Sequence record: OR805294.1
Strand: one strand, 5' to 3'
Length of the DNA stretch: 64,000 nt
Shown here: positions 12,533-41,090 of the stretch, in pieces
Position numbering within the stretch: the first letter of the stretch is position 1
How the letters are laid out: every line of letters starts with the position of its first letter
Program-made: the position numbers and the translations under genes
The notes under the pieces: model-generated
What the model saw: only the letters and a program-made list of their open reading frames with translations
Database searches by the model: none
Told to the model about the DNA's origin: nothing

Positions 12533-12856
12533 ATGGTCTCTGTTAATATACCGTTAATTGTATCTAATAAAATATATAAAATGGAATTTGAATATGGCAA
12601 GGATGATGTGTTATATTTGTGTATGTATAGTGACAATAATACATATCTACATAATATAATAGTCAATACAGAATTTTCTATGCTTTTTGTTCAATGTATG
12701 GGTAAAACTATACCACTAGAATCGATATTATATATCCAGTCAAATATAAAAACAATAAGTGTGACTGATGATTATGGCTGTATAACCCTACATAACGATA
12801 CATTTTGTTTATGTACTGGATATTTTCAGGAAAAAGTTAAATTTTTTGCAGATTAA
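12533..12856 (+). CDS. paralog-array family, divergent member
   Basis: ILYIQSNIKTI motif. Confidence 0.55.
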   Translation: MVSVNIPLIVSNKIYKMEFEYGKDDVLYLCMYSDNNTYLHNIIVNTEFSMLFVQCMGKTIPLESILYIQSNIKTISVTDDYGCITLHNDTFCLCTGYFQEKVKFFAD

Positions 12857-12858
12857 AT

Positions 12859-13185
12859 ATGAATGAACAAATTATATTATGTTTTCAAGCATGCATTAAT
12901 AAATTTGCCTACTTAGGAAACCCAAAAATAAGATTATTTAGAATCGGTAAAAGTGTCAAGATATCTGCACGGAATTATAATAATATGGATATAGGTTCGT
13001 TTGACAGTAATTTGAAATTTTTATTATATATCGATAGTATCCAAGATATTGGAATATATGATGAAAATTTTATATTTTATATATCAATAAATTCAGACGA
13101 AATATCATTTTTGGGTTCTACAGGTACAGCACAAGTAGATACTGAACTTGGAATTACTATATTCTTTACCCGCACCAAAACATAA
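12859..13185 (+). CDS. paralog-array family member
   Basis: IILCFQACINKF / FIFYISINSDEI. Confidence 0.6.
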   Translation: MNEQIILCFQACINKFAYLGNPKIRLFRIGKSVKISARNYNNMDIGSFDSNLKFLLYIDSIQDIGIYDENFIFYISINSDEISFLGSTGTAQVDTELGITIFFTRTKT

Positions 13186-13194
13186 TCCTAAATT

Positions 13195-13452
13195 ATGATA
13201 TTCATTGCACAGCGACTATTATATAACATAACATATAATAAAAATACAATACTGTTCGGTTGTTTTAATAGTGGATATTTTTTAATTAATAGAAGAAGTG
13301 GTATTGGATTCTTATTTACAGATATATGTATGAAACGAATAAAATGCATTTATTTCATATTATATATTTCGCGTAATACTAATACTATAGGCAAAGATGC
13401 AATCTATATTAAAGATTTAGAACTACTCAGAGCAATGCACATACTTCGATGA
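13195..13452 (+). CDS. paralog-array family member
   Basis: MIFIAQRLLYNI / FILYISRNTNTI. Confidence 0.6.
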   Translation: MIFIAQRLLYNITYNKNTILFGCFNSGYFLINRRSGIGFLFTDICMKRIKCIYFILYISRNTNTIGKDAIYIKDLELLRAMHILR

Positions 13453-13757
13453 ATATAAATTTAATACTGCTACTTCAAAGATGTACGTCTGTAATAGGAG
13501 GATTCCAACGCGGCGGCGCAACACTTATCCATATTTATAGTGATTTTAATTTATCTGCTATAATGACGTTATACAAAAGAAGATGCAAATGCATTGTATT
13601 TACTGACATTTTGTTTAACGACATTAAAGACGGTTCTATAGATATCATTATCTATATAAGTAAGAATGCAAACCTAATACACGATAAATTTGCCTACATA
13701 GACACATCTGTTACAGATGAATCTTCTGTTCCTTTACACGATATGACAGGAATATGA
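13449..13757 (+). CDS. paralog-array family member
   Basis: LILLLQRCTSVI / IIIYISKNANLI. Confidence 0.65.
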   Translation: MNINLILLLQRCTSVIGGFQRGGATLIHIYSDFNLSAIMTLYKRRCKCIVFTDILFNDIKDGSIDIIIYISKNANLIHDKFAYIDTSVTDESSVPLHDMTGI

Positions 13758-14239
13758 ATAATCCTATATATAATTTTATACTTGCAAGACGAATATGCAA
13801 ACGGTATAGAATAAAATTCAATCCTTTTGTAAAATTAGATACAGGAAGTTTACAAATAGATAACGCAGATAAAATAACAGTTAGCGTAAATGTATTTAAT
13901 AGTAATTTTATACCTATATTTTGGCACGAAATAGGGCATTATATTCATCATACATTAGTTAATTATAAAATTTATTTAGATTACTATACTCCTATTTGTC
14001 CTACACACGGGTATCTTTTATATAATAAGACACAAGATTTTTATAAATGTCTTTATTCCGAAATGTTTGCTAGTAGATTTGCACTAAAGGTATGCGGAGC
14101 AAAACATAAGAAATACCTCATAAAATGTTTTCACACATACACTTCTGCTGCATTTAAAACCAACATCGCCAGCCAATCCAAATTTACAAGATTTGTAGAT
14201 TTTGTAGAAAAACTTTCTAGAAAATTAGATAGATATTAA
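13754..14239 (+). CDS. ImmA/IrrE-like HExxH metallopeptidase
   Basis: IFWHEIGHYIH with downstream SEMFASRFA. Confidence 0.65.
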   Translation: MNNPIYNFILARRICKRYRIKFNPFVKLDTGSLQIDNADKITVSVNVFNSNFIPIFWHEIGHYIHHTLVNYKIYLDYYTPICPTHGYLLYNKTQDFYKCLYSEMFASRFALKVCGAKHKKYLIKCFHTYTSAAFKTNIASQSKFTRFVDFVEKLSRKLDRY

Positions 14240-14524
14240 TATATGAACACTTATGATTATATAAGACAGAATAACGACAAAATAGTTACATTTGAAACCA
14301 TATTACATATAAGCAGTAGAAGTAGAGTAATAAGACTGCATTACAATTTTAGTTATATTTTACAACGAATGTCTCTAATTCTACCAGATAAACGCGGGAA
14401 CCTGGTAATTAAATACTTTTATTACCGAAGTGTATGAAATATATTTCGTGTATATTATATAACTTTCTGTTCACTACTTATATAAAAGTACATTCCAAAA
14501 ATATTGTAAATATAGTATAGTTTT

Positions 14525-14746
14525 CATATAAAAGTATGCGTATAATTTGCACATATAACGCAATAGCACAGCAACAAACAAAACGTAATAAAAAAATGTT
14601 GCAATAGCTTAAAAGTTTTAGTATAATAAGCACATAACAACGCAATACAGTTTACAAACAAAACGTAATAAAAAATGTTGCAATAGCTTAAAAGTTTTAG
14701 TATAATAAGCGTATAATGCAGCTTATATAACAAGTTAAAAACCCCT
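14525..14746. other. GA/TC-free island (222 nt) covering the tRNA-operon promoters
   Basis: no GA or TC by hand scan. Confidence 0.85.
14574..14710 (+). promoter_or_regulatory. tandemly duplicated sigma70 promoter (57-58 bp direct repeat) for the tRNA operon
   Basis: copies 14574-14631 and 14654-14710, each A-rich UP + TTGCAA-17-TATAAT. Confidence 0.85.
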
Positions 14747-14819
14747 CGGTAGCTCAGTTGGTTAGAGCGCGCGACTCATAATCGCTAGGTCACTGGTTCG
14801 AATCCAGTTCGAGGGACCA
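14743..14819 (+). tRNA. tRNA-CAU (Ile2/lysidine-type or elongator Met), copy 1
   Basis: full cloverleaf, anticodon arm CGCGA-CTCATAA-TCGCT, CCA end. Confidence 0.9.
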
Positions 14820-14841
14820 ATTTTAAGATGTTGTGCTTTTA

Positions 14842-14926
14842 GCCCGAGTGGTGAAATTGGTAGACACAGGAGACTTAAAATCTCCCGCTTCGCAGCGTAC
14901 CGGTTCGAGTCCGGTCTCGGGTACCA
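14842..14926 (+). tRNA. tRNA-Leu(UAA), copy 1
   Basis: cloverleaf with long variable arm, CCA. Confidence 0.95.
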
Positions 14927-14976
14927 AACAAAAGATATAAATACTTAACAAGATAGGAAACTATTCTAAAATTAAA

Positions 14977-15052
14977 TGGCTAGTAGCTCAGTTGGTAGAG
15001 CAAGTGACTGTTAATCATTGGGTCGTAGGTTCGAGTCCTACCTAGCCAGCCA
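14977..15052 (+). tRNA. tRNA-Asn(GUU)
   Basis: cloverleaf, U1-A72, G73, CCA. Confidence 0.95.
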
Positions 15053-15078
15053 ATTACACTTTGTTGTATATTCAATAT

Positions 15079-15154
<76 letters not shown>

Positions 15155-15223
15155 ATTTTAAATAACATTTGTATCTAAAGAGATACAATAGTCTAAATAA
15201 AATATTCATATAATGTTTCAAAC

Positions 15224-15300
15224 GGGACTTTAGCTCAGTTGGTTAGAGCGCGCGACTCATAATCGCTAGGTCACTGGTTCGAATCCAGTAAGTCCCACCA
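15224..15300 (+). tRNA. tRNA-CAU (Ile2/lysidine-type or elongator Met), copy 2
   Basis: same D, anticodon and T arms as copy 1; acceptor GGGACTT/AAGTCCC; CCA. Confidence 0.9.
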
Positions 15301-15350
15301 ATTTTTATATACAAATCAAACTATACTTAAACTATATAATGAATGAATAT

Positions 15351-15435
15351 GCCCGGTTGGTGAAATCGGTAGACACAGGAGACTTAAAATCTCCCGACGA
15401 AAGTCGTGCCAGTTCGAGTCTGGCACCGGGCACCA
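15351..15435 (+). tRNA. tRNA-Leu(UAA), copy 2
   Basis: cloverleaf with long variable arm, CCA. Confidence 0.95.
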
Positions 15436-15444
15436 AACTCCTAC

Positions 15445-15476
15445 AAAAGGAACATATTATAGTATGTTCCTTTTTT
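15445..15476 (+). terminator. terminator of the first tRNA operon
   Basis: AAAAGGAACATA/TATGTTCCTTTT plus T-run. Confidence 0.8.
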
Positions 15477-15661
15477 ATTATGATATTTTTATTATGAATG
15501 AAATAATGCATATATCTGCCAACACATACGTAATAGAATATCGCGTATTAAACAAGTTAGTAGTCACTATAAAAAATAATAGATCTTTTACATTATGGGT
15601 ACATTTTGATATCGGTACATTTTCTATGGCATGGAAATACAATGCAATATAGAATTAAAAA

Positions 15662-15823
15662 ATGAAATACATTATTAATTTACAATACTCAACAGAAGTA
15701 ATATATATGCCGTGTTTCAACATAATATCGTTATGCGATAATAGATCTGTTACTATCCTTTCTATTACTATGATATTTAAGATAAGATACTATTTGCATC
15801 CGATGTTCCGTTATATTCTATAA
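15662..15823 (+). pseudogene. truncated or single-unit member of the paralog family
   Basis: MKYIINLQYSTEVI start motif, stops after 53 aa. Confidence 0.45.
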
Positions 15824-16297
15824 TACATAATATTTTTATTGTAACAAATACCAGAAGTGCTTAGATAATATATAGCAATTCTGTTTATTATCGATATTGC
15901 GGTATACTTAGTATTTCTTATTAACCGTATTACATAGAATAAAGAATGGAAAAAATTTTAACTATTTCACATAAAACATTAATATGTGAACTGTCGTTAT
16001 TAAACTGGTCGAAATCCATAGTTTGTGCATATTCTGGCGAAATAATATGGTATGTTCGGTTGCATAAGAAATGTTATGTAGTACAGCTAAGATGATAATG
16101 AACTGTATTTTTTCCTATTCGTACTATTTAGAACGCATCGTATGTCATGCAAAAATCTACAAAGGGTTTGTAGTCAGTAAAAATACTTTTTGTGAGAAAT
16201 CCGTAATAGCTTTATACTTAATAAATAGTGGTAGTTATTTTCATAAATGTTATGTCGATCATTACTTAATTGTATAGATATATTTTAATAAAAATAG

Positions 16298-16326
16298 TTG
16301 ACCGAACAAACAAAACAGTATATAAT
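16298..16326 (+). promoter_or_regulatory. sigma70 promoter for tRNA-Arg
   Basis: TTGACC-17-TATAAT. Confidence 0.75.
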
Positions 16327-16377
16327 GTTACGCATATAAAGCATTATTACAAAGCTATCATTAGTTGCACAAGATAT

Positions 16378-16454
16378 GCGCTCGTAGCTCAGCTGGATAG
16401 AGCATCCGCCTTCTAAGCGGATGGTCGGGGGTTCGAATCCCTCCGGGCGCGCCA
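16378..16454 (+). tRNA. tRNA-Arg(UCU)
   Basis: cloverleaf, CCA. Confidence 0.95.
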
Positions 16455-16722
16455 ATTTTAAAGAGTGTTGTGTTATGCAAACAATAAGATTTGACATAAG
16501 ACTTCTTCGTTATAGTATGAAACAAGGTTTCTGTTGCATAGGTAAAGATATATTTGAAGTGTGCAGAAAAACTCGGATCAGTCCAGGTCAGCTAAACTTA
16601 CGAAAAAATTATATAGGACGAGTATTAATCGGAATTGATTCGAACTACAATCTGCACAATACCTGTTTAGTAGGCTGGACTCGCTATAAAAATATTATAG
16701 TATAAAAATTTATATTAATAAT

Positions 16723-16965
16723 ATGAATAGATGCAAAGAACATCTACAATACAGAACAATCAAAAAGCATACATTAACTTGTAGGAAATGCAAAGAGTTA
16801 TCGTTACAAATAAAATTATTTTGGCTTCAACAACAAGCATTCAGTATTAGAACCGATACTAGCGGAATATACATATTCGATATTAAATATAATTCTATTT
16901 ACGTATACTCTGTAGCTTGGTATAATACAGAATTATACGGTAAAGGGAAAATAATTTTAGAATAA
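16723..16965 (+). CDS. hypothetical protein
   Basis: ORF; CxxC. Confidence 0.5.
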   Translation: MNRCKEHLQYRTIKKHTLTCRKCKELSLQIKLFWLQQQAFSIRTDTSGIYIFDIKYNSIYVYSVAWYNTELYGKGKIILE

Positions 16966-16993
16966 ACATGTATATATAAGAGTACCTCAAATA

Positions 16994-17326
16994 ATGAATA
17001 ATTATTCTAATGATACAGATATTCTAAAATGGATAAAGCGTAACAATAGAAAAAATGCACGTCTAATTTCATATATAGACGGAATATATAATATTGTTTA
17101 TTTCGATGGCGGAAAAGCAAGAGTTGGCATAGTAAAAGACAATATGCACTGCAGATACGGAATACATAGTCGTGGATCTATGTATTCGAAAGATATAATG
17201 AGCCTGTGGCAATCTAGTACAGGTTCGTGTTCGCCCGATGATGTAAAGATTATGCAAGATTATCTAGACGATAAATGCATACTTCCGGAATTTGATTTTT
17301 CTCAGATTAAAAATTTAAAATGGTAA
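16994..17326 (+). CDS. hypothetical protein within the tRNA region
   Basis: 110-aa ORF with balanced composition. Confidence 0.7.
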   Translation: MNNYSNDTDILKWIKRNNRKNARLISYIDGIYNIVYFDGGKARVGIVKDNMHCRYGIHSRGSMYSKDIMSLWQSSTGSCSPDDVKIMQDYLDDKCILPEFDFSQIKNLKW

Positions 17327-17349
17327 ATAATATAACAATATAGTTTTAT

Positions 17350-17426
17350 CGCAGGGTATGCAAGAGGTCTAAGCAGAAAGGCTCATAACCTTTTTATCGT
17401 GGGTTCGAATCCCACCCCTGCAACCA
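17350..17426 (+). tRNA. initiator-type tRNA-fMet(CAU), atypical
   Basis: C1:A72 mismatch, CAT anticodon, CCA; only two G-C pairs next to the anticodon loop. Confidence 0.8.
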
Positions 17427-17435
17427 GTTTTATAT

Positions 17436-17512
17436 CTAGGCATAGCTCAAGTAGGTAGAGCACTTGCTTTGGGAGCAAGAGGTTGGGGATTCGAGGTCTC
17501 CTGCCTAGACCA
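17436..17512 (+). tRNA. tRNA-Pro(UGG)
   Basis: C1-G72, A73, CCA. Confidence 0.9.
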
Positions 17513-17521
17513 ATTTACTAT

Positions 17522-17594
17522 GCAGTCCTAGCTCAATTGGTAGAGCACTGTCCTTCCAAGTCAGATGTTACGGGTTCGAGTCCCGTGGGCTGCT
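17522..17594 (+). tRNA. tRNA-Gly(UCC) lacking an encoded CCA
   Basis: cloverleaf, U73, followed by CAA; U30:U40 mismatch. Confidence 0.8.
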
Positions 17595-18323
17595 CAATAT
17601 TCTAATATAATCGATGATTCGTGTAGTGGATAAATATGGAAGTATAGTTATACCATCTAATATAACGGTGCTGGAAATACAGGCATACACAACAGAGTTA
17701 GTGTATGTAAGAAAATCTCATTGTTTATGTTTATACATTCCTAATATAGGAAATTATGCTTTATGGTTTTTAGACAGATAGGATAAAAATATAAATCGAT
17801 ATTGTTCTGTTTAAGGAACCAACATTAAATGGCAGGTTGCATATTTAGACTCGATTTGTCTATTTTTCGTGAAAATGTATATAGTATTTCTAGGTTGTCT
17901 TATACAAAATCTATATGTGTTTCAATAAAAACTAAACCGACAAGCAATAGAAGACAATTAGAAATATATGTTGTAGATAAAACAACTGATTTTTTAGTTG
18001 CATGCAAATATTTTTAGCTTATCTATTTTGACTTGCCTTTAAAATAAATAACCATTATATATTTGATATAACAACTATTCTAAATAGAAATAAAACCATA
18101 AATACACATAATAACGGTGTGGATTTATGGAAAACATATTTAGGATATCTATTAATGCTAACGAAGGTATTATACGAATATCCCCTACTTACTTTTTTAA
18201 TGGTGTTTTTTATTCAAAGCATTTGAATATTTTTATAATAGATCCCGACGGATATCTAATAAGAAAAATATATACTTGTAGTACATTCTTATGATGATTT
18301 CTTTTAAATATACAAAATAGCAT

Positions 18324-18352
18324 TTGACACAAGTATAATTATTTCGTATAAT
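18324..18352 (+). promoter_or_regulatory. consensus sigma70 promoter
   Basis: TTGACA-17-TATAAT. Confidence 0.85.
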
Positions 18353-18383
18353 AAGTGTATAAAATAACAAAAGAGAATTTTAA

Positions 18384-18743
18384 ATGATTTCCAAAATTCA
18401 AATTGTATACGGAATATATCTTCCTACTGCTGATGCAAAAATTATATACGAAGACTCGGAATACGAATCTAATAAAATAAATAAAAATATTAGATTATTT
18501 GCAAATGATGCATATTTAGAAGATAAGATTTTAGAAAATAAGGAATTCGAAGATAATCCCTATGTTCCGCACTTTTATGGTATTTTTTGTAAAGAATTCG
18601 ATAATGACCAAAGTGCATACTTATATAATGTTCCCAAATCTTTTATAGATGAATATAATAATGTAGCTCCAGCTATTTTGGCTAGACTCGGTTATTTAGA
18701 TAGAGTTGCAGGAAAACAACATTGTAGAATAATCTACGAATAG
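18384..18743 (+). CDS. hypothetical protein
   Basis: ORF directly after consensus promoter. Confidence 0.75.
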   Translation: MISKIQIVYGIYLPTADAKIIYEDSEYESNKINKNIRLFANDAYLEDKILENKEFEDNPYVPHFYGIFCKEFDNDQSAYLYNVPKSFIDEYNNVAPAILARLGYLDRVAGKQHCRIIYE

Positions 18744-18757
18744 AATTAACTAGTTTT

Positions 18758-18847
18758 GGAGAGGTGATAGAGTCTGGTTTATTATACTAGTCTTGAAAAC
18801 TAGCGGATCGAAAGGTCCCGTGGGTTCGAATCCCACCCTCTCCGCCA
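18758..18847 (+). tRNA. tRNA-Ser(UGA)
   Basis: long variable arm, G73, CCA. Confidence 0.9.
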
Positions 18848-18852
18848 AATAT

Positions 18853-18942
18853 AGATACTTGACCGAGTGGCTTAAGGTGCTTCCCTGCTAAGGAAGTGAG
18901 TTTGAAAAAGCTCCGTAGGTTCGAATCCTACAGTATCTGCCA
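18853..18942 (+). tRNA. tRNA-Ser(GCU)
   Basis: long variable arm, G73, CCA; terminator at 18949-18976 follows. Confidence 0.9.
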
Positions 18943-19302
18943 ACACATAAGCGGAACAATTGTTCCGCTTTTTATTAACCTAATAAATGTTATTTTATAA
19001 TGTTACTCATTATAAAACACAATAACAAAAATATCTTATAATACTAGTTTTGAAATTTCTAAAATAATTTGCAATGATATTTGTTTTAGTTATTATATAG
19101 AAAAAGATTACTAGACAAAGTATTATTGCAGATGTCAAATGCAATCAACTAATATTATTATCTAATTTAGCAAAATCAGAAAATACTCATTTAAATCAGT
19201 ATAGTATTACATTCTGGTATTTTCCATTAAAACAATAAATTTACAATTTTATTAATACACCGAGTATAGTATATTAAATATAAATCACACGAGGTCACAG
19301 TT

Positions 19303-19518
19303 ATGAACAAACATTTCGATATAATTGCCGAACTTGAATATCCTACTTATACTGTACAAGTAAGGAAATATCGCGACGATGGTAGATATGAGGTTGGTCA
19401 ACAACCCAACGAGGGCGAGTATGTTGCACGCCACGAAAATTGCACTGCCGACGACGCCATCCGCGTACTATCTCACTACTGCACAGCAGCCCTTTATAAA
19501 ATAAAGAAACAATACTAA
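19303..19518 (+). CDS. hypothetical protein
   Basis: GAGGT RBS, elevated GC. Confidence 0.8.
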   Translation: MNKHFDIIAELEYPTYTVQVRKYRDDGRYEVGQQPNEGEYVARHENCTADDAIRVLSHYCTAALYKIKKQY

Positions 19519-19731
19519 TTAAATGAGAATATTTGTTATGTGTACAGATGCCGGTCCTTCACCGGCATTTTGGCAAGAACTAAACTGCGGAATAACCTAT
19601 GACACTAAAGATGCGTGTGGCGATTTCAGTGTTAATGACATATTCAATGTATTAGTAAAAAAAGTAAACATAGTGTTATGTGCGAATGTGTCCAACTACG
19701 AGATATTAAGCTATTCTAGGTTCTTAAAATC

Positions 19732-20004
19732 ATGCACATAACTAACCTATGTAAACTATGTTCCATGTATCAATATCTCGAAATCATCATGGAAAATCTG
19801 CAGGACAAAACAACATCAATTATAATTAGATTCGAAGTACCGACAGAGTATGGTAATATTTCGTCTTTCATATTTCATTTTAAAGTACATAAGGAAACAA
19901 CTAAAATAACTAATAATCTAAGTGATTATTCTAATAGAATAAATCATTTACATAACAGTTATATTAGATGGATTAATAACCCAAGAATGAAACTTTATAA
20001 ATGA
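19732..20004 (+). CDS. hypothetical protein
   Basis: ORF only. Confidence 0.45.
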   Translation: MHITNLCKLCSMYQYLEIIMENLQDKTTSIIIRFEVPTEYGNISSFIFHFKVHKETTKITNNLSDYSNRINHLHNSYIRWINNPRMKLYK

Positions 20005-20162
20005 TAAAAATATTTAAAATACAGATGCATTTAGAACATATAGTATATGATCATTTAGCTATATATACTATAGATTCATCATCATCAGCCATCGTTTTTA
20101 TTAATTTAAATAATCCTAAACCCATATGGAACACTCATTATAAACATTAAAGAGAATAATGA

Positions 20163-20513
20163 ATGAACTTTGAGTATGTATTTAAATTAATCAATCTACT
20201 AAAAGTTTCTAGTTCGATAGAATGTATTTCGTTATCTAAATTTTATAACGACTACGGCGTATATATAGAATACAAAAATAATAAAAAACTGCATCGCTTG
20301 TTAGACCATAACATTACTAGCCCAATCAACATTATAGAAGAAGAACTAGAACGCATAATTAGAATTTCTGCATCTAATGTGAAAATATCACCAGTGTACA
20401 ATCGTGCTACCCAAAAAGAAATATTAAATATGTGGATAAATTATACATTAATTTGGCGAAGAACATTTTATTCTAGTGCATATACAATGCAACCGTATTT
20501 GAAGGTAAAATAA
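20163..20513 (+). CDS. hypothetical protein
   Basis: ORF; FEYVFKL start similar to 20690 and 39933. Confidence 0.55.
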   Translation: MNFEYVFKLINLLKVSSSIECISLSKFYNDYGVYIEYKNNKKLHRLLDHNITSPINIIEEELERIIRISASNVKISPVYNRATQKEILNMWINYTLIWRRTFYSSAYTMQPYLKVK

Positions 20514-20689
20514 ATGACAATAGACGAATTTCTAGAACAATTAGACTGTGCATGTACTGATGGCAATTGCATATTTCGCCCATCGCATCGGAAAGGAATG
20601 GTAACTAACGGTGGTTGTAAGTGTATAATAGACAGAAATAAACACACTAATGTACTGAGGTATATTAATTTCTTAAAATCTAAAATAAA

Positions 20690-20908
20690 ATGATAGATTA
20701 CATCTTTAAATTAAGTTCCTATTGTTTAATTTTTATAGATTCATCACGCCATTATGGTGTACACTACGATCTGGCAGAATATTTTTCAGACGGTTCTATA
20801 TGGTATAAATGGTCTTATGAGACCACTTCGCACAACGATACTCAGTATAATAAAGGAAAATACACAAAAAGTTTTATATACTTAATGGAAGGAAAATATT
20901 CAGCATGA
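20690..20908 (+). CDS. short member related to the paralog family
   Basis: MIDYIFKLSSYCLI, cf. MIDWVFKLSASCYEI at 39933. Confidence 0.5.
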   Translation: MIDYIFKLSSYCLIFIDSSRHYGVHYDLAEYFSDGSIWYKWSYETTSHNDTQYNKGKYTKSFIYLMEGKYSA

Positions 20909-21423: not shown

Positions 21424-21484
21424 CACACATTAGATTTATAAATGCAATGCCACTAAATATCTTTAATTATGTAGGAGATATATT

Positions 21485-28169: not shown

Positions 28170-28170
28170 A

Positions 28171-30951: not shown

Positions 30952-30966
30952 GGTATAGATCGAAAA

Positions 30967-31275: not shown

Positions 31276-31295
31276 TCTTAAATGGGCAAAAATGC

Positions 31296-31547: not shown

Positions 31548-31579
31548 AAAGATAAGTAGGTGAACTATCATTTAAACAG

Positions 31580-32745: not shown

Positions 32746-32784
32746 ACTTATCTCCGCAGAAGTAAATCAAATATATCCATATCT

Positions 32785-33096
32785 TTGCAACAATGCCTTG
32801 GTTATATAATTATGGATTTTATTTTCCTACTACAACATAACACTTCTATTATATTATATCGTAATAGTATTATAGAATTATACACAGAAGACGAAATGCC
32901 AGTAATAGACATAGATATAACAAATTCTATGTTCATATATCTAGGTATTTTTAATGACAAAACTGCAATACTCTATCTACAACAAAATACACACACGATA
33001 CATATAGAATCATCAAATTCTTATTATATGATAAGAATGAGAAATATGTACCATAGACACATTTATTATATTATAACACCACATGGATTATATTAA
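32785..33096 (+). CDS. paralog-array family member, duplicate B (start probably 32812)
   Basis: MDFIFLLQHNTSII / ILYLQQNTHTI. Confidence 0.7.
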   Translation: MQQCLGYIIMDFIFLLQHNTSIILYRNSIIELYTEDEMPVIDIDITNSMFIYLGIFNDKTAILYLQQNTHTIHIESSNSYYMIRMRNMYHRHIYYIITPHGLY

Positions 33097-33367
33097 ACTT
33101 ATCTCCGCAGAAGTAAATCAAATTAAAAAATCCGCCCGCCCTGGTTGCACCCGCAACGGCTTAACACTATATAACGTACATGACCAACCTATAATAGAAA
33201 TAAAGATCCAAAAAATAATATCCCGTGCATATGTGCGTGCAAACTACGATAAGTTGTGTAATGAAATCTGTATTCTTTATATACAAAGCCAAACAACTTT
33301 AATATCTACCACACGGAACTCACTAGTAATCTTTACTTCCCACTATATAGTTCACTCTATCATATGA
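33083..33367 (+). CDS. paralog-array family member
   Basis: MDYIKLISAEVNQI / ICILYIQSQTTLI. Confidence 0.7.
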   Translation: MDYIKLISAEVNQIKKSARPGCTRNGLTLYNVHDQPIIEIKIQKIISRAYVRANYDKLCNEICILYIQSQTTLISTTRNSLVIFTSHYIVHSII

Positions 33368-33654
33368 ACCTAATATATACACTGCAACGTAAAACTAGAT
33401 ATATATCCCAATTTGATACTAATTTTGATACTACTTATCGTTTAATTAACTCAGATAGAAAATGCTTTTATCTTATAACACGCAAGAACAAAAAGACCAT
33501 AGTAGACATAGACTATAATATCTTTAATGATATTTTCGGTATATTACATTTACAGTCTAAAACACATATACTACAACGTTCATACTACCTAATAAAAATA
33601 TATGATGTATGTACGGATTTAATATTTTTTATATACCACCATAACCATAAATGA
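33364..33654 (+). CDS. paralog-array family member
   Basis: MNLIYTLQRKTRYI / FGILHLQSKTHIL. Confidence 0.7.
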   Translation: MNLIYTLQRKTRYISQFDTNFDTTYRLINSDRKCFYLITRKNKKTIVDIDYNIFNDIFGILHLQSKTHILQRSYYLIKIYDVCTDLIFFIYHHNHK

Positions 33655-33929
33655 AATTTATTATAACATTACAATCATACACAACTACAATACAGTTTCT
33701 AACTAATGATTTTATATTATATTCTGATAGAAATAGATTATTAGAATTAGGTATATACGATAACAAATTCAACAATTACATATATATCGATAATTTTAAT
33801 AACAATATAATCTTGTGTTATCTTCAACATATAATTTATGCAATGGCCATTCATCCCTTTGGTATAACGATGTATAATAGTAATTTAATAGCAGTTAATA
33901 CAAAATATTACTCAAGAAACCTTTACTAA
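33651..33929 (+). CDS. paralog-array family member
   Basis: MKFIITLQSYTTTI / IILCYLQHIIYAM. Confidence 0.7.
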   Translation: MKFIITLQSYTTTIQFLTNDFILYSDRNRLLELGIYDNKFNNYIYIDNFNNNIILCYLQHIIYAMAIHPFGITMYNSNLIAVNTKYYSRNLY

Positions 33930-33939
33930 AGCAATGAAT

Positions 33940-34560
33940 AAATGATAGAAATACACTACACTATACACTACAAATAATAAGTGATAATGATAAGTGATGA
34001 TAGTGTACAAATAATAAGTGATAATGATAGTGTACAAATAATAAGTGAATTATATAGTACATATTTCGGTGAATACTGATATAATACCAATAGATAGTGA
34101 TAGTGTACAAATAATGATGAATTATATAGTACATATTTCGGTGAACCCTAACATCACCGAAGAAAGAAGGACCAAAATTTTGGAAATCTTGCTCTATAGG
34201 TCCCATTCATTTTCTTTCCAGTTACATTCATTTTCTTCCCAGTTACATTTATATTCTTTCCATTTCTAGCCATTTCTAACCATTTCTAACTATTTTTATA
34301 GATTTTTTTTGGAAAAATCCGTTTTCTGCTATATAGGGACCTTCTTATAAAATATAAGTTCTTTTTCAATAAAAAATATTTTTTTTGAAAATTTCCAATT
34401 CTTGCTATATAGGCCGGTTTCATTATATATTCCCGTTTGCATAACATATACGGAATATAGTATGCTATACGTATATAAACCGTGACTCTAGTCAACTCAC
34501 TTACTGTACGCTTGTTAGCTATTAGATATAATTCCATTTCGTAGTATAACGTATATACAG
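33940..34560. repeat. repeat-rich intergenic region, candidate replication origin
   Basis: 3x GATAGTGTACAAATAAT (33999, 34026, 34099), 2x 28-bp repeat (34046, 34118), pyrimidine tandem repeats 34207-34290, A/T tracts, 3x GCT(A/C)TATAGG. Confidence 0.6.
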
Positions 34561-34571
34561 GAAAACTAGTT

Positions 34572-34841
34572 ATGGATCTGATACTATTTCTTCAACATAA
34601 TACTGTAGAGATGGACTATAGTGAATGGTACGTTCGTCTTAACAACAAGAATGGAAATAATATAGCTATGATTACAGGTAACGGTATTAGACTGTATTAT
34701 AGAAATATCAATTGCTTACTTGGTATTCTTCATTTACAATACTGTAATTATAAATTTTTCATGCATACGGACAATTATATTTCTTTTACTTTTGCTAATA
34801 ATAATAGGTTTGTACATGAAATACATGTTGATTTGAAATAA
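34572..34841 (+). CDS. paralog-array family member
   Basis: MDLILFLQHNTVEM / LGILHLQYCNYKF. Confidence 0.75.
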   Translation: MDLILFLQHNTVEMDYSEWYVRLNNKNGNNIAMITGNGIRLYYRNINCLLGILHLQYCNYKFFMHTDNYISFTFANNNRFVHEIHVDLK

Positions 34842-34844
34842 TAT

Positions 34845-35159
34845 ATGGATTTCATACTATTACTTCAATCTCATTGCAATGAGATTGTATATACCAAGCA
34901 AATTATTAATATGCTTAATGCGCATGATGGGCAGTTCGTATATGGAATTACGTTGCCCATGGGGAGAAAACATATAATATATGATGCATATTGTTTGTAT
35001 AATAATATATGTGATGTGATAGGATTATTGCATATGCAATCTATTCTATCATTTATAGAAGTTAAACATTTAAAATCATTTTCTGGTAAAACAGATACTA
35101 TTGTTAATATGGTGTTTGTTAACGGTTATCTTCAACATGCCATATACATATGGACTTAA
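34845..35159 (+). CDS. paralog-array family member
   Basis: MDFILLLQSHCNEI / IGLLHMQSILSFI. Confidence 0.75.
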   Translation: MDFILLLQSHCNEIVYTKQIINMLNAHDGQFVYGITLPMGRKHIIYDAYCLYNNICDVIGLLHMQSILSFIEVKHLKSFSGKTDTIVNMVFVNGYLQHAIYIWT

Positions 35160-35434
35160 TATTATTATTTCAGTCTCGTTGTTGTAAGATTTGGTATTCA
35201 GATTATATTATAGATATGATCGACTATAGTGATTATACTATAGTATCATTACTACGCCCGCCGAATGGGCGTATGTATGCCTATTGTTCGTGTAACAATA
35301 TAAACAACGAAATTAGTATAATGCATTTGCAGAATAGCATACATTCATTACAAATAAGTTATAGTACCCGTTCTATAATGTGTCGTATGACTAATGTGTA
35401 TGAAGATCTAATTCAATATATTTGTATACTTTAG
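35150..35434 (+). CDS. paralog-array family member
   Basis: MDLILLFQSRCCKI / ISIMHLQNSIHSL. Confidence 0.75.
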   Translation: MDLILLFQSRCCKIWYSDYIIDMIDYSDYTIVSLLRPPNGRMYAYCSCNNINNEISIMHLQNSIHSLQISYSTRSIMCRMTNVYEDLIQYICIL

Positions 35435-35697
35435 TAATGTATTTTATCCTGTTTATACAGAAATTGTGTTGTTCGATTAGAAGGGCTTCGCATGGATTCG
35501 ATATTTTTGATACAAATGAAGTAGCATATTCATTAATAGATCATCATGGTTTCAGTATGAAACATTTTGTTTCGTACTCTGTTATAAACGATGTAATAGG
35601 AATTATACATTTACAAGTGCATACAAATAAGTTTTATTTTTTTATGGATATGATTTGTTTTCTAGATAGTAAAGGCGGTCATTTTTTTAGTTTATAG
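35422..35697 (+). CDS. paralog-array family member
   Basis: MYFILFIQKLCCSI / IGIIHLQVHTNKF. Confidence 0.75.
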   Translation: MYTLVMYFILFIQKLCCSIRRASHGFDIFDTNEVAYSLIDHHGFSMKHFVSYSVINDVIGIIHLQVHTNKFYFFMDMICFLDSKGGHFFSL

Positions 35698-35709
35698 AGG
35701 ACGGAATTT

Positions 35710-35973
35710 GTGTTATTAATATTAATGCTTCAGCGTAATGTCGAATGGATTCTTTATACTGATTGTGAAATTCGACTTGTTCTGCCCGATTATAATACGT
35801 TATATCGTTTTCTAATTCAGATACAGAAAATTAATGGGTATCTAAATTGCCATGCTAGTAATGACATTGTAGGTATGTTTTATTTACAGTACAATTGTGA
35901 TACTATATCATTTAATAGATTTGATGAATTTATGATACTAAACCACAATGGCGTAATAATTTTTGGCTGGTGA
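35710..35973 (+). CDS. paralog-array family member
   Basis: MLLILMLQRNVEWI / VGMFYLQYNCDTI. Confidence 0.75.
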   Translation: MLLILMLQRNVEWILYTDCEIRLVLPDYNTLYRFLIQIQKINGYLNCHASNDIVGMFYLQYNCDTISFNRFDEFMILNHNGVIIFGW

Positions 35974-36272
35974 CTAGTATGGATATTATATTGATCCTTA
36001 GCAGTGAAGTTATAAGAATACAAGGTTGTTTTTATGATATAGAAACTTTACAAATAAGGTTCTTTATTAATGAATACGACTCAATATATTCTTGTAATAA
36101 AATGGGAGGATTTGTTAACTATAAAACATTTCCCAATGAACTACTAGGTATAATTCATTTGCAGCAGAATACACACCGGTTTGTAACACACGGTAAATGT
36201 ATATTTTTTGATAGTGTAGATTTTATTTCTATTCACTGGGAGACTTTGTTTGACACAAACGAATATGTATAA
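35970..36272 (+). CDS. paralog-array family member
   Basis: MDIILILSSEVIRI / LGIIHLQQNTHRF. Confidence 0.75.
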   Translation: MTSMDIILILSSEVIRIQGCFYDIETLQIRFFINEYDSIYSCNKMGGFVNYKTFPNELLGIIHLQQNTHRFVTHGKCIFFDSVDFISIHWETLFDTNEYV

Positions 36273-36276
36273 TGAT

Positions 36277-36503
36277 ATGAATTATATATTACTAATTAGT
36301 AACCAGTCTAAATATATTTCGTTGAAGGCACTTGGATTAACTGTAAAAACACGTGAACCAAGGTTAACTCATTATATTATATTTTAAATATGAACGAAGA
36401 ATATGATATATTATATTTGTCTAACAATACTATGCAAATAACATTTCGTTTTTCAGTATATTGTTTTTATGATAAAACTCGTAGTATTATATATTGTCAA
36501 TAA
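36277..36503 (+). pseudogene. split paralog-array member
   Basis: MNYILLISNQSKYI...stop (36277-36387) and, in another frame, ILYLSNNTMQI (36390-36503). Confidence 0.6.
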
Positions 36504-36516
36504 GACAGAAATATAA

Positions 36517-36831
36517 ATGGATTTAATATTAACACTTCAGCATAAAACTGTGCTAATATCACAGTTTAGTGCATTATTTGTATTTCAAAATATAAACAGT
36601 GATACTATATTTTGTTTGGATATAAGTAGACATGTATATTATTTCGAAATAATATTCAGGTTATATAATAATAAGAATGGCATGGTGTATTTGCAACATG
36701 CCATTAATTCCATTAAGTTTACCTTTAGTTTACAATATCATACAATTCGTGGATATTCTAGTATACCATCTATATATATGTATGATAAAAAATATGCTAT
36801 TGTACACGTACCATATGTTAGGAATACTTAA
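36517..36831 (+). CDS. paralog-array family member
   Basis: MDLILTLQHKTVLI / NGMVYLQHAINSI. Confidence 0.75.
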   Translation: MDLILTLQHKTVLISQFSALFVFQNINSDTIFCLDISRHVYYFEIIFRLYNNKNGMVYLQHAINSIKFTFSLQYHTIRGYSSIPSIYMYDKKYAIVHVPYVRNT

Positions 36832-37130
36832 TGGATCTTATATTATACATTCAGTACAGTGCTCATAAAATAGAAACTGTTTATAAATCATATCTATTTT
36901 ATAGTAATAACTATTCACTTTATTACAGACTGTCTGTATATAAGAGATTATTGGTACCATCGGGTAGTGAATCATATGCAAGGGCTTCGGCTGAATATTC
37001 TGCTATTACAGACAAAATAGGAATTATACACTTACAATCGAAAACACACGCAATATTATTTGTTATAGACAGTATGTGCATTCACGACAAATCGTATCAA
37101 ACACTCCATTATATTATACTAAGGTCATAA
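36831..37130 (+). CDS. paralog-array family member
   Basis: MDLILYIQYSAHKI / IGIIHLQSKTHAI. Confidence 0.75.
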   Translation: MDLILYIQYSAHKIETVYKSYLFYSNNYSLYYRLSVYKRLLVPSGSESYARASAEYSAITDKIGIIHLQSKTHAILFVIDSMCIHDKSYQTLHYIILRS

Positions 37131-37511
37131 TGTTTATAAGTTTTATTCCGCCTGTTGCAATGTTGATACGACTACAATCAAATCTACATATTATCTGTTT
37201 TGATTCTATTTATGATAGTATAGTGTTTTGTGATAAAGACGGCGACGAAATACATTGCTGCTTATGGTAGCGTGTTTGCATTTAACGCAAAAACATGTTA
37301 TACAGTATTGTTTGTTGAGTATTTTGACATTGTTGTTTCTAAAAATCTTTTATATAAAGGATTAATATGCATAATATATTTAAATTATCATATTGTACAA
37401 ATATGTTTAAATTTAAAATATTATGGGATCAAAAAGTATACCTATGCTCGTTTATGTCATTGCGGTATACTACCCTATATATTTCTGCAGGTCGTATCAG
37501 ATAAATGGTAA
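37129..37511 (+). pseudogene. frameshifted paralog-array member
   Basis: MLIRLQSNLHII in one frame (stop 37270); ICIIYLNYHIVQI in the 37230..37511 frame. Confidence 0.55.
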
Positions 37512-39932
37512 CAAATATATTAGAATTAATGTATGTATGTCACCATACATATAATATAACAACTGACAGCTACTATAACATTTTCTTCTTAAATAAAAAT
37601 AATAAAATTATCTTTGTTGTGTATTAAAACAAATGGGAATATTTCTCTTATCACGCAATACTTGCTATATTTGTGTTATACATGTCAGACGCATTGTATA
37701 CAAGATTAAAATGTATGACAGACATGGCAATTATGTGTTTACAATTAATGTTATCTAAGAACATATTAAATTATATAGAATTTGGTTGTATGTAATACAG
37801 TTTAATAATGGCAACAGATATTGATAAAATAACATACATTTCATTTAACTCATGCTATATATCAGTTAATCGTTTTAGTGTTATTATATATTATGAGTAC
37901 GGTAGATTGATTTTATATGATGATACCCCCGGGCTTATATAAGAACGTATTCTACATACAGTATAATGTACGTCATATCAGCATATATTATTTTGATGCA
38001 TGTGAATGTAATATATTACAAGTAGAATGCAATAATTTTCTTACTCTAACATATAAATTAAATGAAAAAACCAATAAGTAATATAGTTGAATTATCGCTT
38101 AATACGCACCGGTTTAATACCAATTATATAACTAGTGCTCATTGTTTAGTATTTTATAATGCGTCGTCATATCCTATACATTATGTTCGTTTACACACAA
38201 ACAAACGTTAACACTTATGTCGCCGGTATCAATTCATAATATAGTTTGTATTCAACACTATCTTAATAGATGGTATACTAGAATATCCCCAACAGGTATT
38301 AATGTGTATTCAGATTCATATGTTAGAATTAGAATAAATGTTCATAAATAAAAATATTATAAATCACGATATACATTATGATATGTTGCAGGTATCTTCA
38401 TGCGCACATACAATAGATTCATCGCTATGTAGTACATATCTATTGGCATGCATTTATAATAGTAATGAAAAAATTATTATAATTAGTGTTGCATATCTAA
38501 GATGAATGGTATAAAAGATATAATAGAATTTTCATCGCATGCATACGAAATATGTGCAAATACAGCAAGACTTAGAGATATAGTATACTACTCGATACTC
38601 ATAAAGGCAAAAGACGGTCTTGCATTTTATATGGTAGACTCGTTTGCATATATAACATGACCAGTATCCTTGAATGTTCTTACAATACTTCTAATATTAT
38701 GTTTCGTTTTTGTAAAAACAGTGATATTTTAGTTGTGAACTTTCTAAACAAAAATGATGACATACATTTCATTGTAATAATTAGATACAAATATACATAT
38801 CGTTAATTACTAATACATAGGAGAGTAATAAATGAATAGAGCAGCAAAGAAAAATGTTTCTATATTTGTTATTCAGAATCATACTTTTAGAGTTCATGTT
38901 GTACGATATGATCCTGCGAGAATTTCAATATATCTCTCACTTGTACATAATTGTGTTGCATCTTAAGAACTATATCTGTATAATGTAGGTTACATTTGCA
39001 TGTATAGGATTATCTTTCATATAATATATGCTTATTAACTATACGACATGTATTGAATTACTTTATAGTATTGTATGATTCGTAAAAATATAGTTCTAAT
39101 ATCACATAACACGTCAAAAATAATATTAGAAAGAAGAACAAGCAAAGTATTACGTGTTTCTATATTTAAATCAATCGGAAAATACTACTACCATTATTAT
39201 ACAACGTGTGGGAAACTATAATGCAAGATCATCATTTCACTACACTGTTGTATATGTCTAATCGTGCAGATAAAATAAAGATTTTTCGACAGCCTTCCTG
39301 TCTTATTGTATATATTAAGTCAGGTATGTTATATATTAATAAACAATTCTTAAAATGTTAGAATATATAGATACTCTCAAATATAATTACATTTTAACTG
39401 TATGCAGCGGTGTAGAGTCTATATCATTTGAATCATTTACTAGATCAGTGATATCAGTTTCCATAATATATAATAATATTACTATCTTTCCGTACCAAAC
39501 TACACGAACTATACTGTATGGTGTATAATCTTATTTTTATTTCTTGTAATGTTTCTTTAATTAGTTTTTCTATTTTTAATAAAACATTTGAAGTTTATAT
39601 TTATGGAAAAATGTTATTGGTAATTTATTATACAGGACTGCATATATGTTAGATATATTGCTACGGTTCCAACGCAGAGTGGATACAATTAAGGTGGAGT
39701 TAATATGGCGTCACTTGCATTTTTATGAAAAAGCCGGCGAGGAGTTAGAGTTATTTCATATTATATTTCTGCCGCCCGATCACCGAAGTATTAATTAACA
39801 AAAACAAGTTGTATTTTTCGGCATAAAAATTTATGAATAAAGATACAAACAAAGAATCACCTATTATTAAAGAATTATATTTTATATTAAGATTGTAAGT
39901 AAAATAAAATACTTTTAGAATCTAAAACTAAA

Positions 39933-40082
39933 ATGATCGATTGGGTATTTAAATTGTCTGCTAGTTGCTACGAAATAGACGGACAATATAGTGAGACAAT
40001 AAAAATATATAATTCATATTGTCTGTTAGGAACTATACAATATTATAATACTCAATTGAAAATAAATTTATATAAATTTTAA
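39933..40082 (+). CDS. 49-aa single-unit or truncated family member
   Basis: MIDWVFKLSASCYEI. Confidence 0.45.
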   Translation: MIDWVFKLSASCYEIDGQYSETIKIYNSYCLLGTIQYYNTQLKINLYKF

Positions 40083-40408
40083 TATTGTAGTGAGAATTCT
40101 TTTAAATAGGCATACTATATGAATGATCTATTACAATACCAACTCACATTATGTTCCATATCATTGCAGAAAGCTCGTTTTAAGTCAGGCAATGTGTATT
40201 ACATTCTAATTGAACGTAACGACAGCGGTAGGTATTCCCGAGATATAAAAATACTTAAATGATATGCGTATATTTGTAATATCACAAAATTGCATGACTA
40301 TCAGACTTTTTTATCATACATATTTCATTAAAGATGTAAATTATGATTCAATTTGTGTATTATATAAAACGAATAGCAGAATTGTAATACATCCGAGTTT
40401 TACAGTAG

Positions 40409-40597
40409 ATGAATATATTCGATCTGTCTTATAATTCTTCATTTATTTTGATGAAATCGAATAGAATATACATTAGTAATAATATCTATCGTGTAGGAGC
40501 TACATATGTATTACCTGCAATAACGAAATATATACATCAAATATTCTATGTAAACGCTGCAATATATAGATTTTTAGATACAGGTATACTAGTATGA
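40409..40597 (+). CDS. 62-aa single-unit family member
   Basis: MNIFDLSYNSSFI. Confidence 0.5.
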   Translation: MNIFDLSYNSSFILMKSNRIYISNNIYRVGATYVLPAITKYIHQIFYVNAAIYRFLDTGILV

Positions 40598-40782
40598 AAT
40601 TCAATATATTTAAATTGCAAAGAAGATGTCACATTATAAATTGTCATTTTTATGACATTCTTAGATTTTCAAAACCTACATATTTTCGAGATGCTGATAG
40701 AATAACTATATTTTCATTAATAGGTACTAATAGTATCGGAATTTACGCGGATATGTATAAAGGATATGCACAAACCATATGA
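40594..40782 (+). CDS. 62-aa single-unit family member
   Basis: MKFNIFKLQRRCHII; ATGA coupling. Confidence 0.55.
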   Translation: MKFNIFKLQRRCHIINCHFYDILRFSKPTYFRDADRITIFSLIGTNSIGIYADMYKGYAQTI

Positions 40783-41090
40783 TTGAAATATTAATATTTT
40801 CGAGTGTTAGTGATTATATTAATATAAGCCACGATATGGCACGGCTATATAATCTTAATGGTGTTAGTGAATTAATATTTGCATCAAAACCATACAAGTA
40901 TATTATATTAACTAATTTAAAAAATCGTATAGGTATATTCTGTATTTCAAATATAATAAGTGAAAGGGTGATGGGAGATATTACTAGTAATGAATGTTGG
41001 GCTTATCCTTGGCCTCCAGATACTGGCATAGATGTATATATTGATTTCCTGTATAAAAATGATGAGCTTTCTACTAAACACACAATATAA
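40779..41090 (+). CDS. paralog-array family member
   Basis: MIEILIFSSVSDYI / IGIFCISNII. Confidence 0.6.
   Translation: MIEILIFSSVSDYINISHDMARLYNLNGVSELIFASKPYKYIILTNLKNRIGIFCISNIISERVMGDITSNECWAYPWPPDTGIDVYIDFLYKNDELSTKHTI

Follow-up and report, generated by a model that had tools for sequence, protein, structure and literature searches.

A family of small one- and two-unit proteins arrayed beside the terminal-repeat boundary in the Pseudomonas jumbo phage Ettore and other PA5oct-like phages

The window analysed here, a 64,000-nucleotide stretch of the Pseudomonas phage Ettore record (OR805294.1; window position equals record position minus 124000, as 30000-38000 matches record positions 154000-162000 with 100% identity), carries a family of about 40-55 small genes, concentrated at 28.6-41.1 kb and built from one or two copies of an approximately 45-residue unit. 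Ettore is a PA5oct-like jumbo myovirus (Arenbergviridae, Wroclawvirus), and with its relatives in GenBank it makes up a set of 10 phages: Ettore, PAC2, 30-2, 30-3, Callisto, Paride, Deifobo, Cassandra, PA5oct and MIJ3. The family fills roughly 12-15 kb, about 5% of the genome, the array region has a G+C content of 26-30%, and every coding sequence in it, like the family in every record, is annotated only as 'hypothetical protein'. We show that the family is statistically real, that its two halves are homologous and that its open reading frames (ORFs) are held open by selection. We suggest, with a probability of roughly 45%, that its products are accessory early-infection proteins which bind host proteins for takeover or counter-defence.

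BLASTP by itself joins just eight ORFs. A hidden Markov model (HMM) seeded on these eight recruited 26 plus-strand ORFs after five rounds, while the best E-value among reversed and shuffled copies of all window ORFs was 7.7e-4. As members match their own model by construction, they were rescored with leave-one-out profiles, in which the target and all its BLAST-detectable relatives had been removed before model building. Under this regime 22 ORFs scored 15-41 bits, compared to shuffle maxima of 6-15 bits, with 40779, 12533 and 15662 (ORFs are named by their first position) as marginal cases. An HMM of a single unit recovered 40 plus-strand ORFs at 10 bits or more, none on the minus strand and none among three shuffles per ORF; when iterated, it likewise gave 40 ORFs (E < 1e-3) with equally clean controls. 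The profile searches with their leave-one-out, shuffled and opposite-strand controls confirm the array of 'about 40' paralogs put forward in a preliminary description of the window, and uphold the homology against the doubt, voiced there, that an HMM might reveal none.

A position-specific scoring matrix (PSSM) of 14 columns, for which p-values were obtained by shuffling each ORF and p ≤ 0.05 was taken as positive, marked 55 ORFs at 12.5-41.1 kb, where approximately five were expected, and 39 of the 52 consecutive plus-strand ORFs at 28.6-41.1 kb were motif-positive (counts by bin in Table 1). The dense part of the array had been placed at 25.3-41.1 kb; the solid block starts at 28.6 kb, and just three of the nine ORFs immediately upstream of it bear the motif. 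Likewise, members do occur at 12.5-13.8 kb, where outliers had been noticed, but others lie at 15.4-15.8 kb, across 14.5-25 kb and at 44626 and 60689.

The unit occurs singly or in pairs. About 24 two-unit genes encode 82-107 amino acids (aa) and about 20-30 one-unit genes encode 37-62 aa; besides the two-unit genes, about 16-30 further ORFs bear the 14-residue motif. Profiles of the N- and C-terminal halves align over 39 columns (hhalign probability 90.5%, E 1.3e-6), which bears out the two-repeat organization claimed earlier, and the consensus common to both halves reads about M-D-L-I-L-x-L-Q-x-x-T-x-x-I, followed by strand-like segments. In the unit, a predicted N-terminal helix with h-h-I-L-x-L-Q is followed by a turn with a conserved Thr/Cys and by three or four beta strands, and in two-unit proteins the second motif copy is found at residues ~48-62. 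The motifs quoted in the preliminary description were located at 34572-34841 and 36831-37130. Mean column identity among 22 members is 24%, with 12-26% pairwise identity to the reference, so that the term 'almost unalignable' was fair, and the idea of a single small repeated unit that has been strongly diversified is supported.

Members contain much Ile (14%) and Tyr (8.4%), are enriched in His (2x) and Cys (1.6x), and have little Glu, Ala, Gly and Lys; of the residues reported earlier as enriched, Ile, Tyr and Cys were found to be so, but Asn only 1.1x. Median hydropathy (GRAVY, grand average of hydropathy) is +0.15, and isoelectric points span 4.4-10.4, hence there is no charge common to the family. 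AlphaFold2 applied to 34572 with 22 paralogs gave a model (mean predicted local distance difference test score, pLDDT, 82.1; predicted template modelling score, pTM, 0.63) composed of helix 3-10, four strands, helix 48-58 and three strands. For 30377 (44 sequences) the model was poor (pLDDT 54), with the same order of elements. It seems that the motif would form the hydrophobic core of a small scaffold, the surface of which would consist of the freely changing strands and loops.

Selection was assessed in 22 kb around the array in nine phages, each substitution being counted once. Stop-creating changes are depleted both in 26 ORFs of at least 80 aa (8 seen versus 43.2 expected, P = 6e-11) and in the mini-ORFs (1 versus 9.0, P = 0.0012). 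The family ORFs are held open by selection, which argues against pure stuffer DNA, one of the readings offered in the preliminary description. An omega-like ratio, defined as nonsynonymous to synonymous changes relative to random placement, amounts to 0.74 in two-unit genes (P = 6e-5) and 0.52 in mini-ORFs (P = 8e-7), compared to 0.07 in a set of five conserved neighbours, among them TilS and the M23 peptidase. Nei-Gojobori estimates are 0.59 for the pooled family and 0.01-0.05 for conserved genes.

The constraint is unevenly distributed within the proteins. The ratio of nonsynonymous to synonymous changes is 1.29 in the motif versus 2.91 outside it (Fisher 3.5e-5), synonymous rates being alike in both (0.130 and 0.102 per codon). 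Furthermore, a wide choice of synonymous codons is found where Leu, Ile, Gln and Thr are conserved, e.g. six Leu codons in one column, which indicates that the constraint acts on the protein and is not a DNA signal. The motif is under purifying selection, and the remaining sequence evolves close to neutrality. Point estimates of the ratio of nonsynonymous to synonymous substitution rates (dN/dS) exceed 1 for 34572, 32458, 35725 and 33651, none of them significantly, and pairwise values are confounded by allele replacement and paralogy. The comparison of dN/dS among isolates, proposed at the outset as a check, showed selection in the motif and a near-neutral remainder.

The stretch at 37.1-40.8 kb, occupied by one-unit mini-ORFs, is not debris. 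The best motif match falls inside the first 13 residues in 22 of 25 mini-ORFs, and their mean PSSM score is 3.6, whereas their own shuffles average -5.2 and small ORFs located elsewhere -7.5 (Mann-Whitney 2e-8); their lengths are kept in the eight other phages. Typing as N-like or C-like, where alternation would denote split two-unit genes, was clear for the 36265/36390 pair only, which resembles a two-unit gene interrupted by a stop. As regards gene coupling, 24 of the 51 junctions in the array overlap, eight of them as ATGA, in agreement with the translational coupling described earlier.

Each of the nine phages compared gives 22-24 matches to the two-unit profile in unchanged order, and about four or five differences in copy number or integrity were found among these isolates, which come from Switzerland, Japan, Thailand and elsewhere. 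The array is therefore not a fast accordion, and the 'birth-and-death accordion' of the preliminary description finds no support in that form. Paralogs are about 20-35% identical and positional orthologs 66-100%, so the expansion predates the known isolates. We conclude that the array is old, that synteny is mostly kept, and that copies have occasionally been duplicated in tandem, truncated or split. Copies 32458 and 32812 share 88% of their DNA and 67% of their protein sequence, and their flanks are repeated, the ends of both neighbouring genes having been copied; dN/dS between the two copies is 2.1 and does not exceed 1 significantly (p = 0.29). Copy 32458 is found in Ettore, Paride, Deifobo and Callisto only. 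Alleles of 34572 are 69-99% identical among isolates, and phage 30-2 carries two divergent ones in tandem, the extra copy being 90% identical to the MIJ3 allele, while the 29444 ortholog is split in MIJ3. Several orthologs occur as discrete alleles, 66-80% identical, within genomes that are otherwise ~95% identical, and this mosaic pattern indicates that recombination among circulating phages contributes. Duplicated, truncated and half-size copies (the 32458/32812 pair, the 37130 truncation and the mini-ORFs, respectively) coexist with intact members, which supports the mixture of forms noted earlier.

The array is divided by a non-coding gap (33930-34571). The end of the PA5oct record maps to window position 34154 and its start to 34155, and a repeat_region annotated there as 1..39080 constitutes a 39,080-bp direct terminal repeat. 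Half of the array thus occupies the far left end of the repeat, and the other half comes immediately ahead of the right-hand copy. When the PA5oct annotation is mapped onto Ettore, which is how position inside or outside the repeat was judged, part B of the array falls within the repeat (window 34155 onward), whereas part A (28.6-33.9 kb) does not, nor do the outliers. The array does flank the site that had been taken for an origin candidate, but in terms of the PA5oct annotation this site is the terminal-repeat boundary. Tandem Repeats Finder detected repeats of 27 nt x3, 21 nt x2.8 and 10 nt x3.6 in the gap, which bears a repeat_region label, 'CRISPR', in the records of Paride and Deifobo; as the periods are unequal and there are no cas genes nearby, the label looks like a false positive of a repeat finder. 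Rfam gave no relevant match at 33.8-43.3 kb. A scan for promoters returned 177 sites versus 160 in shuffles and is uninformative in such AT-rich DNA, so the sigma-70-like site upstream of part A (Table 1) is only a candidate; no perfect TTGAC-N-TATAAT was present inside the array.

Early transcription in PA5oct comes almost wholly from this strand (Lood et al. 2020, PMC7318152), and the family members in the array are all on the plus strand, which corresponds to it. The genes gp34-gp105, 'but also gp450', were described as 'highly transcribed' at 5 min (PMC7318152), and 30377-30682, the gp450 ortholog, is the sole member with published expression evidence. In the PA5oct record, labels of virion detection by tandem mass spectrometry with electrospray ionization (ESI-MS/MS) are found on none of gp2-gp33 or gp444-gp460, although small proteins can escape this method; gp38 is labelled. 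The family is not mentioned in the PA5oct, MIJ3, Paride and jumbo-phage review papers.

Searched against 1.84 billion representative proteins, the family profile matched 21 small Wroclawvirus proteins and one HNH_repeat protein. No match was found for up to 44 members in Pfam, PHROGs, NCBIfam or PDB sequences, and single-member queries of IMG/VR and JGI metagenome contigs returned no relatives. Judged by these searches, the family is specific to the PA5oct-like jumbo phages (Wroclawvirus), in keeping with the earlier failure to recognise it. Foldseek comparison of the 34572 model with PDB and BFVD, a check also suggested earlier, gave no match at E ≤ 0.001, i.e. no known fold. The top PDB rows were other two-repeat folds, namely cyanovirin-N, glyoxalase/FosX-type beta-alpha-beta-beta-beta pairs and YegP/DUF1508. 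These likewise consist of two tandem half-domains within about 90-120 residues, and DUF1508 exists in single and double forms, but the matches are insignificant (best E 0.04, template modelling score 0.18-0.40) and there is no sequence similarity.

Large tandem arrays are already known from jumbo phages, while the family itself is undescribed. Phages G and 121Q carry tandem arrays of >30 similar genes, interpreted as growth by tandem duplication in jumbo myoviruses (Hua et al. 2017, mBio, PMC5646251), which is comparable with the 40 ORFs that Ettore has at HMM E < 1e-3, and the PA5oct paper puts PA5oct in the broad clade of 121Q. However, the copies in G and 121Q are 'very similar', whereas in Ettore column identity is 24% and a single pair reaches 67%, and the Ettore array mixes one-unit and two-unit forms. 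The profile search of 1.84 billion proteins found no relative outside Wroclawvirus and hence no detectable homology to these arrays, the 121Q array not having been scanned directly.

Blocks of early or host-takeover genes linked to long terminal repeats are represented by the T5 pre-early region, the SPO1 host-takeover module and the Tre genes of Twort-like phages. In these, as in Ettore, many small genes of unknown function lie on one strand in or beside a direct terminal repeat, and the PA5oct repeat is reported to be transcribed early (PMC7318152). On the other hand, those blocks do not consist of a single expanded family, half of the Ettore array is outside the repeat, and the strongest early transcription reported in PA5oct is that of gp34-105, downstream of the array. 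Among eukaryotic viruses, the asfarvirus multigene families and the poxvirus terminal host-range families are located near genome ends. They share with the Ettore family a position at or close to terminal repeats, a set of dozens of diverged small paralogs, copy number and alleles that differ among isolates, and a kept scaffold with varying surfaces, as proposed for Ettore. However, there is no relation in sequence or fold, neither virus realm nor host is the same, copy number is nearly constant among the Wroclawvirus isolates, and function has been demonstrated for some of the asfarvirus and poxvirus proteins, whereas the Ettore family is known from sequence.

Based on these observations, we propose that a two-unit protein, or a dimer of one-unit proteins, would make a pseudo-symmetric binder, different copies having different partners. 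The products would be made early and bind host proteins for takeover or counter-defence, and each member would be dispensable on a permissive laboratory host. Several points weigh against this proposal. No member has a known partner, phenotype or protein product. The genes gp2-gp33 are absent from the strongly early genes named for PA5oct (PMC7318152), thus most of part B may be weakly transcribed. A Shine-Dalgarno match of at least 4 nt precedes only 9 of the 52 array ORFs, as compared to 34 of 73 elsewhere. The near-neutral evolution outside the motif fits relaxed constraint as well as diversifying selection, and in no gene is dN/dS significantly above 1. The proteins are unusually hydrophobic with few charged residues, which is odd for soluble binders, and the three-dimensional model is only moderately confident for 34572 and poor for 30377.

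The main rival, which we regard as somewhat unlikely, is a weakly constrained gene nursery or filler that arose by tandem duplication and is tolerated as a headful-packaging jumbo phage has room for it. Its ORFs would stay open mainly because coupled translation protects a long transcript, or on account of their youth, and most products would have no specific function. Near-neutral amino-acid change outside the motif keeps this explanation in play: the ratio of 2.91 found there differs little from the roughly 3.1 expected under neutrality, and the overall omega-like ratio is 0.74. The scarcity of Shine-Dalgarno sites, the many gene overlaps and the absence of part B from the strongly early list fit it as well, and individual isolates lose, split or truncate copies without obvious harm. 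The arrays of G and 121Q were also read as genome expansion by duplication (PMC5646251). However, the motif is clearly under protein-level purifying selection in both units, and all paralogs, down to about 20-35% identity, still keep the unit; such fold retention is not expected of pure filler. Moreover, 10 isolates originating in several countries share gene order and ORF lengths, and stop-creating changes are depleted five- to nine-fold.

A more elaborate version of host-protein binding seems improbable to us. According to it, single units would homo- and heterodimerise, fused genes would fix useful pairs, and the resulting combinatorial set would neutralise varied defence and stress systems. 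If this were true, about 50 genes would provide a broad, evolvable repertoire against P. aeruginosa defences, and the family would correspond, in a phage, to the multigene families at the genome ends of large eukaryotic DNA viruses, with a fold unseen before.

We consider it quite improbable that these are packaged internal proteins of the T4 type, in which the N-terminal motif would be a capsid-targeting signal and the variable bodies would be injected to block restriction. It is true that the N-terminus M-D-L-I-L-x-L-Q is conserved in many members and that the bodies of these proteins differ from isolate to isolate; by analogy, the polymorphic internal-protein loci of T-even phages look similar. 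However, the motif is not confined to the N-terminus, a homologous copy being located mid-protein in every two-unit protein, and in the predicted structures it is a helix that packs within the fold. The orthologs also have no virion mass-spectrometry label in the PA5oct record, in which neighbours such as gp38 are labelled.

Even smaller is the probability that we attach to degenerate homing-endonuclease-associated repeats (Pfam HNH_repeat, PF18780), i.e. DNA-binding modules left by mobile elements. The sole profile match outside Wroclawvirus is the 340-aa six-unit HNH_repeat protein P0021 (E 5.7e-6, three stretches), with the piece E-L-I-L-x-L-Q-Q-K in common. However, hhalign of the one-unit profile with the six P0021 repeats gave 46% probability (E 2e-4) and little beyond the helix, PF18780 was unmatched even at E ≤ 1 in the ten members scanned, no HNH or other nuclease domain was found in or beside the ORFs, which encode 37-119 aa, and no nuclease gene inside the array. 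Furthermore, the predicted unit combines a helix with beta strands, while the HNH repeat is all-helical. The kinship via P0021 was rejected as a helix-only resemblance. Finally, an artefact of base composition in AT-rich DNA, or a repeat at the DNA level whose ORFs are incidental, has next to no probability and was likewise rejected: it would suit a region of 26-30% G+C and proteins dominated by Ile, Tyr, Leu and Phe, but composition-preserving shuffles, reversed sequences and minus-strand ORFs gave no matches at the thresholds applied, synonymous rates are equal in and out of the motif, conserved residues use varied codons, and ORFs of about 95 codons on one strand are unlikely to stay open across nine genomes by chance.

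PA5oct-like phages are therapy candidates able to kill dormant P. aeruginosa (PMC10761892). If the proteins are host-directed binders, the array would be an off-the-shelf library of small inhibitors directed at Pseudomonas proteins and could throw light on host range and on how defence systems are withstood. If it is a tolerated nursery, it would be a clean natural example of jumbo phage genome growth and would illustrate the duplication, fusion and splitting of a ~45-residue unit. Under either reading it constitutes a defined, testable gene block and a candidate new small fold.

Table 1. Members of the family, associated features and motif counts in the Ettore window (LOO, leave-one-out profile score; HMM1, one-unit HMM score)
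Feature	Position	Strand	Remarks
Outlier block, four members of 85-108 aa, two units each	12533-12856, 12859-13185, 13195-13452, 13449-13757	+	LOO 11.6, 20.4 and 17.4 bits for three members; 12859 HMM1 19.6 bits; PSSM p = 0.003 for 4/4
Two short members between tRNA genes	15464-15652 (62 aa), 15662-15823 (53 aa)	+	15464 HMM1 15.9 bits; 15662 LOO 11.6 bits; PSSM 21.0 and 15.5, p = 0.003 each
Nine array-adjoining ORFs, 71-164 aa	25271-28494	+	Eight of unknown function, one M23 peptidase; motif in 26527-26886, 27828-28169 and 28171-28494 only; 27828 and 26527 recruited in late HMM iterations only, omega-like ratio 0.89, not different from neutral
M23 peptidase	27341-27835	+	Pfam 24.9 bits, E 2.4e-5, under the 28.7-bit gathering score; counterpart annotated peptidase M23 in PA5oct record
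Sigma-70-like promoter candidate, GTGACA-17-TATAAT	28491-28519	+	11/12 positions match; best of the region; 88 nt upstream of first core member
Array part A, outside terminal repeat	28607-33929	+	20 consecutive ORFs, all motif-positive; LOO 15.8-39 bits; orthologs intact in nearly all 8 other phages
Part A, two-unit members	28607-28900, 29444-29704, 29736-30029, 30026-30307, 30377-30682, 32201-32455, 32458-32745, 32812-33096, 33083-33367, 33364-33654, 33651-33929	+	
Part A, divergent members	28929-29222, 29305-29451, 30670-30951, 30967-31275, 31296-31547, 31631-31936, 31878-32204	+	
gp450 (EST35_0450) ortholog	30377-30682	+	89% identical, 101 aa, position kept; LOO 33.9 bits
Tandem duplication, about 354 bp	32431-33096	+	Copies 32458-32745 and 32812-33096; chimeric junction ORF 32723-32809
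Non-coding gap, 642 bp	33930-34571		Short tandem repeats; contains site matching left edge of PA5oct terminal repeat
Array part B, inside terminal repeat, nine two-unit members	34572-37130	+	LOO 21.6-41.5 bits; orthologs are PA5oct gp2-gp10
Part B, members	34572-34841, 34845-35159, 35150-35434, 35437-35697, 35725-35973, 35979-36272, 36517-36831, 36831-37130	+	
Split two-unit gene	36265-36387 and 36390-36503	+	N-like then C-like; split in all phages
One-unit mini-ORF run, about 23, 37-62 aa	37130-40782	+	Tightly packed
Truncated copy	37130-37270	+	46 aa versus 85 aa in PA5oct
Last block member, marginal, 103 aa	40779-41090	+	LOO 9.4 bits versus shuffle maximum 9.6; HMM1 29.6 bits, but in training set; PSSM 12.5, p = 0.003
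Isolated one-unit member, 67 aa, MINIPLLQYKTHTI	44626-44829	+	Deeper in terminal repeat; HMM1 17.7 bits though outside the model; PSSM 17.5, p = 0.003
Possible isolated one-unit member, 49 aa, weak	60689-60838	+	HMM1 10.5 bits; PSSM 12.9, p = 0.003
PSSM-positive ORFs	12.5-14.5 kb		5/6
PSSM-positive ORFs	14.5-25.2 kb		8/31
PSSM-positive ORFs	25.2-28.6 kb	+	3/9
PSSM-positive ORFs	28.6-37.13 kb	+	29/29
PSSM-positive ORFs	37.13-41.1 kb	+	10/23
PSSM-positive ORFs	Remaining three bins		1/16, 1/24, 1/34
PSSM-positive ORFs	Whole window	-	5/92

With regard to base composition, AT skew drops to zero or below within 28000-38000 (-0.08 at 34-36 kb), and GC skew is -0.23 at 32-34 kb. The plus strand is A-rich over the remaining window, while the coding strand of the array is unusually T-rich, which agrees with proteins rich in Ile, Phe, Tyr and Cys and poor in Lys and Glu. 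Islands richer in G+C are present at 50000-52900 (52%), 62000-64000 (50%) and 42000-44000 (44%) in a genome of ~30% G+C, and the host-like composition of the ORFs at 50166-52810 suggests horizontal acquisition.

Upstream of the array, 12 tRNA genes are clustered at 14743-18942, including three for tRNA-Met(CAT), and a pair of Met(CAT) and Leu(TAA) tRNA genes is duplicated (14743-14926 and 15224-15435). Some 6 kb downstream of the tRNA cluster, a phage TilS is encoded (24551-25162; PP-loop, 126 bits), so that one of the CAT tRNAs may be a tRNA-Ile modified with lysidine to read AUA codons. A 161-aa ORF (13754-14239) directly after the outlier members contains an HExxH motif (HEIGH) and a sub-threshold match to the zinc-metalloprotease domain PF07737 (20.2 bits, cut-off 27.4); it may encode a small metallopeptidase. 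The small ORFs upstream of the array also include genes for a GDSL-type lipase/acylhydrolase (21485-22123; Pfam 32.9 bits) and a DksA/TraR C4 zinc-finger protein (22131-22460; 40.9 bits).

BLASTP revealed two further paralog pairs in the window: 7858-8541 and 8591-9280, both on the minus strand, and 43139-43843 and 61964-62422, which includes the ortholog of the PA5oct virion protein gp38. On the minus strand at 41500-43100, many ORFs of 30-60 aa are annotated in the Ettore, Paride and Deifobo records, where the PA5oct record has ncRNA001 instead (about window 42417-42652), and these ORF calls look like over-annotation.

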